From Octopus sinensis (taxonomy: Eukaryota): 64,000 nt of DNA. The translations under genes and the position numbers were made by a program. The notes under the pieces were generated by a model that was given only the letters and a program-made list of their open reading frames with translations, ran no database searches and was not told where the DNA came from. Below are positions 50,934 to 53,155 of the stretch, one piece after another (within the stretch, counting starts at the first letter, position 1; each line of letters starts with the position of its first letter). The stretch covers positions 1 to 64,000 of the forward strand of contig NW_021832861.1 of assembly GCF_006345805.1 (NCBI RefSeq), given 5' to 3'.

Positions 50934-50994
50934 CGATCTGGCCGACGAGTCCGCTTACGCGCGGCGGCGTTCCCTGATGGCCCGGAGAAGACGA
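50487..50994 (+). pseudogene. 18S rRNA: Orphan 18S rRNA 3' fragment (V7-V9), fused to R2
   Basis: CTTCTTAGAGGGAC, ATAACAGGTCTGTGATGCCCTTAGATGTCCGGGGCCGCACGCGCGCTACACTG, CCTGCCCTTTGTACACACCGCCCGTCGCTACTACCGAT; ends GAGAAGACGA. Confidence 0.97.
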
Positions 50995-53155
50995 CTGATT
51001 CGCATATATGATAAGGAAAGCGGGCACCTCCATTCTATGAGGTGTCACGCAGGTAAATGCGATGGCAGTGCATTTAGAGCACCTGCCCCTAGTCCGGCTC
51101 TAGTCTCCTTTGATTGTGACCACTGCAGCCGTTCTTTTTTGACGGCCGTAGGTCGATCGCAGCACATTCAACATAATCATCCTGTAGTGGCAAATGCCCG
51201 CAGGATTGCTGCTCGCTTAAAGCAAATTGCGAAAAAACGTGCCGATCGGGCAGCCGCTGCTGAGGCAATAGGCCAAAGACGCAGGGGCTGTTGGTCCGAC
51301 GAAGAAGTAGCGGTCCTCGTTGAAAAGGAGTCTGAGCTGAAGATGATAGGGGTAAAGCAGATCAATGCAGGCATTGCACGGTTCCTACCGGGAAAAACAG
51401 CCAAACAGGTAGGATCGAAAAGGGCTGACCTGGCCAAAAGGGTTCATAAGAGTCATCAAGGGTCAGAGCAGTCCGCGACCAATACCCAATCACAAATCGG
51501 GGGAGAACCCCAGTCTAGTTTTGACTGGAAGGATCGCTTCCTCAATGCTGCATGTCCCAGGCATACCCGCTGGTCTGCAGTCTTCTCCGAGGCCCTTTTG
51601 GAACTCGTGGAAGATGGGACAGCGATTGTTTGGGACTCATTTGAGAAAACTATAGAGGACTGGGTGGAGCACTATGAATCGCGTAGGGAAGTTACCAACA
51701 ACAGGAGAAATTTAGCTAGTGATAGAAACACACCGAATACGTGTAACTTTAGGCCTAGGCGTCGGGATAATCGTCAAGCTTATGCCCGACATCAAGATTT
51801 ATTCAGAAAGAATAGGAAGAAGCTCCTTGCAGTTGTTAGGTGAAAACAGGGAGCAGGAATGCCCTATTCCAATCTATTCAATAGAGGAATTCTATAAGAG
51901 CAGGCTTTCCGCTCCAGGCCCTGGGGTGGATCTGAAGAACTACCCTTCCTCCTCCCAGGTTGAGAACGACTCCATTTTGAGTCCGTTATCCGTGGAGGAG
52001 ATTAAGGTAAGTAGGAAGCAAATGAAGATCTCCTCAGCGGCGGGTCCAGATGGCATCACTATAGGTGAAATCAAAGCAATGGACCCAGCTGTTCTAACTA
52101 ATATATGCAACTGCATGTTGCTGGCGGGTAAAGTACCCGAGATCCTGAAGCGGGGGAAGTCGATTCTATTACCCAAGAAATCAGACGACTCATACGATCT
52201 TGCTAATTGTCGGCCAATCACGATATGTTCTGCGGTATATCGTTTATTTTCAAAGATGGTCGCCAAACGCATGCTTCAGGTAACTCCCCTAAATCAAAGT
52301 CAACGTGGCTTTATTCGCGCGGACGGCTGCAGTGAGAACTCTTTTCTCCTACGACAACTCGTCACTCGCGCGATGGGGAGGCCAGCACGACTGAGAATAC
52401 CGCGGCTGGAGGTTGCCTTCTTAGATCTCTCCAAGGCCTTCGACACAGTCTCGCACTCGTTGGTGTATGCGGGACTGCGGAGACTTGGGTTCCACGAACA
52501 CATAATAGCGCTCGTGGAGGGGATCTACGAAGGTAACACTACCAGATTCTCAGTCGATGGGCAACTGAGTTCACCTATTGAGATTCGTCGAGGTGTTAGG
52601 CAGGGGGACGCGCTCTCGCCGATCCTCTTTAACATTGCAACTGACCCACTGCTAGATGTGTTATCCGGCTGTGGGGATTTGCAGGTTGACGGGATCCGGA
52701 TGGATGGAATCGCGTACGCCGACGACATGGCCCTAGTTGCGAAATCGCGTGAGGGGCTCCAGGCTCTTATGGATAGATGCCTGGAGTTCTATAGCGCGGT
52801 TGGACTGGGGCTTAATGTCGTGGTGTGCGTGATTCTCCATTCGCGGCTCAGGCAAGTCCTACCTCGTCAATGATAGCACCCCGCCGATGATTAATGGGAT
52901 CACTATCAAAAAGGTAGAACCAGGGGATAAGGTATTATATCTTGGTGTTAGCATCCCTACGTGGACTTCAATCTCTAGTCGGGAGTTTGACTTAAATTCA
53001 GTGGAGCAGGTGTCACTGGACATTGATAAAATGTGCAGGGCTCCGCTGAAACCCCGACAAAAATTCCTCTTGCTTCAAAGTTATTACCTGCCTAGACTTT
53101 TTTACAGTCTGGTGCAGTCTTTGCCGTCAAGGGGGATATTAGAGAAGCTTGACAC
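50995..53155 (+). mobile_element. R2: R2 array unit 1 (5'-truncated within ZF2, 3'-truncated after RT)
   Basis: ORF pieces 50698-51843, 51719-52873, 52887-53155. Confidence 0.95.

Follow-up and report, generated by a model that had tools for sequence, protein, structure and literature searches.

In the first 64,000 nucleotides of contig NW_021832861.1 of Octopus sinensis (assembly GCF_006345805.1; hereafter the window), a sense fragment of the 18S ribosomal RNA (rRNA) gene runs into a sense, 5'-truncated copy of the retrotransposon R2. This 18S-R2 joint is a single illegitimate junction and an ordinary decay product of ribosomal DNA (rDNA) and R2 debris. The window as a whole is a decayed cluster of rDNA fragments and dead A-clade R2 copies. 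The evidence comes from the make-up of the two joined partners, from a related R2 copy in its usual 28S site and from the R2 array that follows the joint. We tentatively explain the fusion by a deletion inside an rDNA unit that carried R2, either while the 5' end was being joined or afterwards, an account that we favour with slightly less than even confidence.

An 18S rRNA pseudogene is joined to a truncated R2

The 18S partner was recognised by a match to the Rfam family SSU_rRNA_eukarya (50380-51120, plus strand, 169.9 bits, E = 4.8e-49, model positions 1356-1739). Two features were delimited within the matched region.

50470..50994 (left boundary approximate), plus strand: 18S rRNA pseudogene fragment, from the Rfam match, the sequence and flank comparison
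50875..50892, plus strand: 9-bp tandem duplication within the 18S fragment, two copies of GTCGATCAC, from a 9-nt insertion relative to the SSU model and from the sequence

The fragment begins with a GC-rich expansion at about 50470, continues with the conserved 3' domain, aligned from about 50639, and ends in helix 44, which reaches GAGAAGACGA at 50985-50994. These are the last clear 18S bases, and they should lie about 70 nt short of the mature 3' end. The fragment is broken off at both ends, and the duplication sits in a near-universally conserved stretch, immediately 5' of GTCCCTGCCCTTTGTACACACCG. A duplication at such a place together with the two cuts makes the fragment non-functional, and it is therefore a pseudogene and no working gene. 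Its left flank (49770-50470) is AT-rich and without a second copy in the window, and nothing in it could be recognised as rDNA. The 3'-terminal 18S sequence GGAAGTAAAAGTCGTAACAAGG is found nowhere in the 64-kb window, even at 3 mismatches, and a metagenome scan with GGCCCGGAGAAGACGA for an intact 18S 3' end returned 120 GC-rich stretches, none of them in 18S context.

Two features lie immediately downstream of the 18S fragment.

50995..51005, plus strand: filler, 11 nt of uncertain origin, CTGATTCGCAT, from alignment with three R2 copies
51006..53155, plus strand: u1, R2 from the second Cys of zinc finger 2 (ZF2) to position X of the open reading frame (ORF), frameshifted, from self-comparison, alignment and translation

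The Rfam match and the alignment of R2 copies together establish that both partners are in sense orientation and that the R2 unit, u1, is truncated at its 5' end. When 50900-51120 is aligned with three other R2 copies in the window, the first unambiguous R2 base is 51006 (ATATGATAAGGAAAGCGG versus AATGTGATAGGGAAAGCGG). The fused copy translates as ...RLIRIYDKESGHLHSMRCHAGKC / ...IYDKESGHLHSMRCHAGKC, and R2 is entered at the second Cys codon of ZF2, which reads TAT there. The original prediction, made from the letters of this DNA, had 18S running at GAGAAGACGA into the middle of zinc finger 2, and the Rfam match, the R2 alignment and the translation all agree with it. Its count of about 6 unassigned nucleotides has to be raised to 11, or to about 7 if GCAT is taken as R2 with a 3-nt deletion. 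The 11-mer has no second copy in the window. The filler may be decayed 18S (CTTGATC) or decayed R2 (CAGATGCAT), each reading needing several insertions or deletions. An open frame of 381 codons (50698-51843) crosses from the 18S fragment into R2; it looks like an accident of the fusion and not like a gene.

The R2 family belongs to the A-clade and occupies the canonical 28S site

An R2 copy of the same family lies 13 kb from the 18S-R2 joint, in the orientation opposite to that of the array, and is followed by 28S sequence.

37540..41491, minus strand: copy C, a frameshifted R2 of this family, truncated at its 5' end and seated in the canonical 28S site, from self-comparison, the junction sequence and matches to a reverse transcriptase (RT) domain and to R2 structures
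36690..37539, minus strand: 28S rRNA fragment downstream of the R2 site, about 850 nt, from Rfam LSU_rRNA_eukarya (215.3 bits) and smaller matches up to 37582

The 3' end of copy C reads ...GAGAATTTAGA/TAGCCAAATGCC, an exact ATTTAGA/TAGCCAAATGCCTCGTCATC junction at 37540/37539, and the 20-mer TAGCCAAATGCCTCGTCATC is present without mismatch at 37520-37539. On its downstream side this junction has the form of a canonical insertion, ...TTAAGG/TAGCCAAATGCC, the 28S identity coming from Rfam. The 28S fragment breaks off at about 36690, where sequence resembling a short interspersed nuclear element (SINE) starts. Because copy C sits in the exact 28S site and is 92-95% identical to the R2 units adjoining the 18S fragment, the normal target of this R2 family is the canonical 28S site. 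The predicted family terminus, ATTTAGA, is confirmed at two places, at 37540, where it is joined to 28S, and at 63346-63352.

Copy C retains an ORF of 630 amino acids (37904-39796, minus strand) that matches Pfam RVT_1 (E = 3.9e-23). Against the Protein Data Bank (PDB) this ORF matches the A-clade R2 structures 9nl2, 9nl3 and 9dou at E = 1e-95 to 1e-97, and more weakly the D-clade R2Bm (8gh6, E = 1e-58) and L1 ORF2p (1e-9). As to the C-terminal CCHC motif and the restriction-like endonuclease of R2, the motifs CPRC...H...C and IPDLV are visible and a second stretch is matched to the R2 structures; the copies are mutated, and the Pfam zf-RVT match falls below threshold. In the most complete copy, translation of 57999-58340 gives ZF1 CPLCPLRFSSPQDWGEHVICGH, ZF2 CIKCDRESGHLHSMRCHASKC and ZF3 CDHCSRSFLTAIGRSQHVRHKH, fingers of the CCHH, CCHC and CCHH types, followed by a Myb-like region, and the stretch from ZF3 to Myb aligns to A-clade R2 structures at E = 5e-13. 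The nearest database proteins are fish R2s with 33-35% amino-acid identity. Judged by these sequence comparisons the lineage is a divergent A-clade R2, and every copy in the window is frameshifted.

The 5' untranslated regions (UTRs) of R2 at 30163-30400, 61935-62080 and 63370-63580 carry two to three tandem, partly degenerate copies of a motif composed of GYCTGGTATGTTATGACC, a hairpin and GGTGGATGCAYTGCCAGG. RNAalifold predicts for the three regions a long stem that includes the 7-bp pairing G(C/U)CUGGU : GCCAGGC, and a second conserved stem-loop. The motif may be the 5' ribozyme of R2. When the entire window was searched against Rfam at E <= 1, no hepatitis delta virus (HDV)-like ribozyme was matched; the search returned only microsatellite-driven microRNA noise, pieces of rRNA and a few weak sub-threshold matches.

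Unequal crossover produced the periodicity of the array

Self-comparison, including sensitive self-BLAST, and protein mapping gave the order of the units that follow u1.

53156..56700, plus strand: u2, a mosaic R2 unit that starts at about nt 386 of the 5' UTR and ends at ORF position X, from diagnostic sites, sliding identity and junction alignment
56701..61668, plus strand: u3, R2 that likewise starts at about nt 386 of the 5' UTR and passes via ZF1-3, Myb, RT and the C-terminal domain to the 3' end ...GAGATTAGA, with several frameshifts, from self-comparison, translation and 3'-end alignment
61669..63352, plus strand: E3', a diverged R2 derivative made up of 5' UTR and 3' UTR with the ORF deleted, ending in ...CTCATTTAGA, from sensitive self-BLAST and 3'-end alignment
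63353..64000, plus strand: E4, a 17-nt spacer (63353-63369) and, from about 63370, the 5' UTR of a further R2 that runs past the end of the window, from self-BLAST

In E4, 63738-64000 matches at 76-77% the sequence with which the 5' UTR segments of u2 and u3 begin. The array has a period of 3.54-3.55 kb that is produced by junction X, at which the ORF (...GACACCGCTGGCCG) passes into 5' UTR at a short stretch in common with E4 (GCGGCCGCTGGCCG). The array had been described as head-to-tail; its first two joints are in fact internal ORF-to-5' UTR junctions, a single junction duplicated by unequal crossing-over. The two X junctions are identical to each other. At about 150 diagnostic sites up to 56481, u2 tracks u3 apart from two short u1-like patches, and at 16 of 16 sites between 56608 and 56691 it tracks u1, which places the switch between 56481 and 56608. 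Unit u2 is thus a mosaic that arose by one unequal homologous crossover between u3 and u1. It follows from the clean switch and the identical X junctions that the 3.55-kb repetition is not the product of serial insertion, that the ancestral order was 18S, u1, X, u3, E3', E4, and that rearrangement at the DNA level has taken place in this array.

Unit u1 represents a distinct sublineage that is about 92% identical to the other copies and carries 99 private substitutions. The ratio of nonsynonymous to synonymous change (dN/dS) on private substitutions is 0.33 for u1, 0.22 for u2 and u3 together and 0.40 for copy C, which indicates that most of the divergence arose under selection in active sublineages; a rough calculation from substitution counts suggests that about 1-2.5% is neutral decay after insertion. 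We also considered that u1 might simply be a much older copy, and the value on its branch speaks for selection in an active sublineage. With divergence mostly predating insertion, the age of the copies does not separate the explanations discussed below.

Only two joints in the array are true end-to-end R2/R2 joints. The joint at 61668/61669 reads GATTAGA/AGAGAAG..., without GG after the terminus, and the joint at 63352/63353 reads ATTTAGA/GGCCTGTTTCC.... Both contain spacers of 14-17 nt (AGAGAAGAGAAGAA, GGCCTGTTTCCTCTCTT) with no 28S between the copies, and after the spacers the conserved R2 5' UTR starts, as it does at a third, unrelated site at 30160. Inspection of the spacers for remnants of 28S or 18S by eye yielded only matches of 6-7 nt (CTCTCTT, GTTTCC), which we judge to be at chance level. 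The three R2 3' ends align via a conserved GTGGGACCACCCAC...GGGAAG block that leads to ...TTAGA, and a terminal hairpin in them keeps its pairing through changes on both sides, as assessed by eye. The two R2/R2 joints probably arose by retrotransposition, either through end-to-end template jumping or through re-insertion beside an existing copy, and should be kept apart from the 18S joint. A literature search on natural tandem R2 arrays found nothing relevant.

Within E3', self-BLAST aligns 61935-62235 with E4 at 63400-63747, 62711-62929 with 57461-57684, and 62970-63329 with the 3' UTRs. Its identity to the autonomous copies is no more than about 64-83%, and one copy was seen. On its architecture E3' may be a member of a non-autonomous family. 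There is also a third R2 locus (30160-32283), which is more divergent, lies in non-rDNA surroundings and is scrambled like the array. Its order is 5' UTR start, ORF residues about 293-489 of the RT piece, the distal part of the 5' UTR, then zinc fingers with Myb; internally deleted R2 next to R2 is thus a recurrent arrangement in this genome.

A deletion within an R2-bearing rDNA unit may have fused 18S and R2

Where R2 occupies an rDNA unit, the 18S gene is found a few kilobases upstream of it and points the same way. A single deletion in such a unit therefore yields exactly a fusion of sense 18S with a sense, truncated R2. The deletion would start about 70 nt before the 18S 3' end, span internal transcribed spacer (ITS) 1, 5.8S, ITS2, the 5' portion of 28S and the initial 1.9 kb or so of R2, up to zinc finger 2, and leave sense 18S, a short filler and sense 5'-truncated R2. 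It could have happened as resected upstream DNA was being linked to a truncated cDNA, or during later end joining. The 18S fragment and u1 would then once have belonged to one rDNA unit, and beyond base 64000 the array would be expected to reach TAGCCAAATGCCTCGTC, reflecting its origin in the canonical 28S site. This is the simplest explanation of the joint and had been left out of the original prediction.

Both breakpoints of the 18S-R2 joint are internal, which is the norm for deletions and supports this account. The precise 28S insertion of the family, the pseudogene state of the 18S fragment and the frameshifts in all R2 copies also speak for it. Besides the crossover mosaic u2, further events at the DNA level are present in the window: the truncated 5' end of copy C abuts a 5' fragment of a long interspersed nuclear element (LINE), the 28S flank is cut by SINE-like sequence, and copy C and the array are oppositely oriented. 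Other internal R2 junctions are X, at short homology, E3', without an ORF, and the scrambled locus at 30160-32283. Insertions of 5'-truncated R2 with deletions of the upstream 28S target and non-templated bases are documented (PMC2718515).

Several points weigh against a deletion. No ITS or upstream 28S remnant links the 18S fragment and u1 to one unit, and TAACTATGACTCTCTTAAGG is unmatched in the window at up to 3 mismatches. The 18S fragment is cut on its left as well, next to a non-rDNA flank, so that at least one further rearrangement is needed. Unit u1 continues at junction X into another R2 and not into 28S, and a filler of 11 nt is long for simple end joining. That the deletion was kilobases in size is our own inference; the documented deletions at R2 5' junctions (PMC2718515) are not stated to be of that length. 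Finally, one locus cannot tell a deletion of DNA from a switch at the RNA level.

Template switching is the rival that survives best, although we consider it somewhat unlikely. Here the R2 RT would have left its R2 RNA at zinc finger 2 in the course of target-primed reverse transcription and gone on along 18S rRNA or its precursor, copying about 525 nt of 18S into the GC-rich expansion before the cDNA joined the chromosome. In an extended form, 18S, u1, u3, E3' and E4 would be one multi-template cDNA, and indeed all five segments have the same sense. The 7-11 unassigned bases at the joint are expected from non-templated addition, and the two precise R2/R2 joints (61668/61669 and 63352/63353) are hard to obtain except via retrotransposition. 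Units u1 and u3 derive from distinct, once-active sublineages (branch dN/dS 0.2-0.4), and so both RNAs could have coexisted. The R2 RT is known to jump in vivo to U12 small nuclear RNA in Drosophila ambigua and to tRNAs in other Drosophila species (PMC3414825), and A-clade R2 proteins in human cells give rise to U6 fusions and head-to-tail tandem copies (PRINT, PMC11371274).

The documented jumps, however, lead from the R2 RNA's 5' end to a small RNA's 3' end and leave the chimera within the 28S site. In the present joint the donor point is internal, in ZF2 and about 1.9 kb away from where R2 starts at its 5' end. On the acceptor side, 18S presumably stops about 70 nt before its 3' end. The upstream half of 28S, represented by TAACTATGACTCTCTTAAGG, is absent from the window at the threshold given above, and the left flank is non-rDNA. 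A single cDNA would require more than 13.5 kb of synthesis and four switches, and the sense-sense orientation is equally expected from a deletion in an rDNA unit. The chimera that had been proposed for this joint therefore keeps sense 18S directly 5' of R2 in its favour and lacks the hallmarks of documented jumps. We regard it as unlikely that the order from 18S through u1, u3 and E3' to E4 is a fossil of serial RT copying of 18S rRNA, two R2 sublineages and an RNA resembling the short internally deleted elements (SIDEs) of R2. If that were true, R2 in the nucleolus would be able to generate, in a natural genome, chimeric retrocopies of rRNA and R2 as well as head-to-tail R2 arrays that are free of a target.

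An assembly artefact joining rDNA-derived and R2-derived reads is improbable. Repeats of rDNA and R2 are classic sources of misassembly, and there is a published precedent in which an R2 annotated beside 18S turned out to be a mis-annotation (PMC13580325). Against this stand the private mutations on both sides of the junction, the 9-bp duplication in 18S and the 99 substitutions in u1, which are unlike collapsed consensus repeats, and the neighbouring repeats, which have been told apart despite 92-98% identity and show a crossover pattern that is clean, as from long-read assembly.

We consider a second, 18S target of this R2 lineage very improbable; it would lie at CATTTAGA/GG, where insertion would be primed by ATTTAGA microhomology and repeated insertion at the regenerated site would have built the array. 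This second proposal of the original prediction starts from the family terminus ATTTAGA. Also in its favour is TCATTTAGAGG at 63343-63354, which should equal 11 nt of the usual invertebrate 18S; the target itself presumably lies about a dozen nucleotides downstream of the joint in typical 18S. The choice of target by R2 rests on protein-DNA recognition and not on RNA microhomology. A second target would imply independent copies at one 18S position and 3' junctions of the form ATTTAGA/GGAAGTAAAAGTCG. Where R8-like elements have 18S on both sides of a fixed site in several copies, the window holds one 5' junction, and the 3' ends join 28S or other R2s. The same family sits exactly in the canonical 28S site in the window, and unequal crossover of one internal junction accounts for the first two joints of the array. 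The predicted ATTTAGA/GG at 63346-63354 is present; its GG at 63353 continues as CCTGTTTCC and then as the 5' UTR of the next R2, not as 18S (AAGTAAAAG). The other end-to-end joint is GATTAGA/AG. The sequence CATTTAGAGG at 63345-63354 occurs exactly once in 64 kb, a count reached in 17 of 100 shuffles, and the 18S fragment ends at least about 1-12 nt before the proposed site. Relatives of R2 have changed target, R8 to 18S rDNA in Hydra and R9 to another 28S site in a rotifer (PMC5035012; PMC4838377). For this family, with its 28S target, a window lacking the 18S 3' sequence (GGAAGTAAAAGTCGTAACAAGG, at up to 3 mismatches) and a period that stems from crossover, insertion into 18S with regeneration of ATTTAGA/GG has no positive support.

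Other repeats surround the R2 and rDNA fragments

A degenerate LINE of the apurinic endonuclease (APE) type occupies 44622-49770 on the plus strand. Its ORF1 has a CCHC knuckle, and the element also carries Exo_endo_phos and RT domains; the nearest database LINE is 64% identical. Its 5' part is duplicated, 41494-42437 repeating 44622-45566 at 97%, and the duplicate abuts the truncated 5' end of copy C. Two tandem tRNA-like or SINE-like units (…GTTCTGAGTTCAAATTCC…GCCTTTCATCCTTTCGGGGTCGATAAA…AGTACCAG) lie at 36390-36870 on the minus strand, at and beyond the break point of the 28S fragment, and related pieces are found at about 18885-19100, at 15270-15350 and at 9778-9919. The 3' tail of the LINE, GTTGGCCCCTTGTGGGCAATAAACAAATAAA, is similar to that of the SINE-like sequences around 36400-36700, a likeness that suggests a LINE-SINE partnership. 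Positions 1-13700 contain long degenerate microsatellite or minisatellite blocks (for example 5194-6173 and 11531-12608), and these blocks cause dozens of spurious sub-threshold Rfam microRNA matches.

Comparison with known R2 systems

A new 18S target, if true, would be the third independent retargeting within R2 and of interest for engineering site-specific insertion by R2. The evidence does not point to it. The locus is a well-resolved example of the decay of R2-laden rDNA outside the functional array, comprising a divergent A-clade R2, precise R2/R2 joints without 28S, a SIDE-like derivative, a crossover mosaic and one 18S-R2 fusion. It also cautions that a single rDNA-R2 adjacency is a poor basis for claiming a change of target.

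With A-clade R2s that insert into 28S, such as R2Tg of zebra finch and R2Lp of Limulus, the octopus family shares three N-terminal zinc fingers with a Myb-like region, the RT and, in copy C, the 28S site. The copies in the window differ in that all are dead, most lie outside an intact 28S context, and identity to the nearest proteins is 33-35%. E3' has the architecture of the Drosophila R2 SIDEs, 5' UTR plus 3' UTR (PMC3414825), and is one copy only. Like the elements R8 and R9, the family has affinity to the R2-A clade, and 18S sequence abuts an element here. What defines R8 and R9, however, is that in many copies both junctions lie at the new site, whereas the window offers a single 5' junction of a truncated, dead copy. 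The chimeras of U12 or tRNA with R2, of U6 with transgenes (PRINT) and of U6 with L1 share with this joint a sense non-coding RNA directly upstream of the element and a few extra bases. They differ from it in their breakpoints, both of which are internal here, and in the upstream 28S that is absent here. The truncated R2 insertions described earlier (PMC2718515) share with it a truncated R2 5' end joined to upstream rDNA with filler; the deletion implied at the octopus locus would be kilobases long and reach into 18S.

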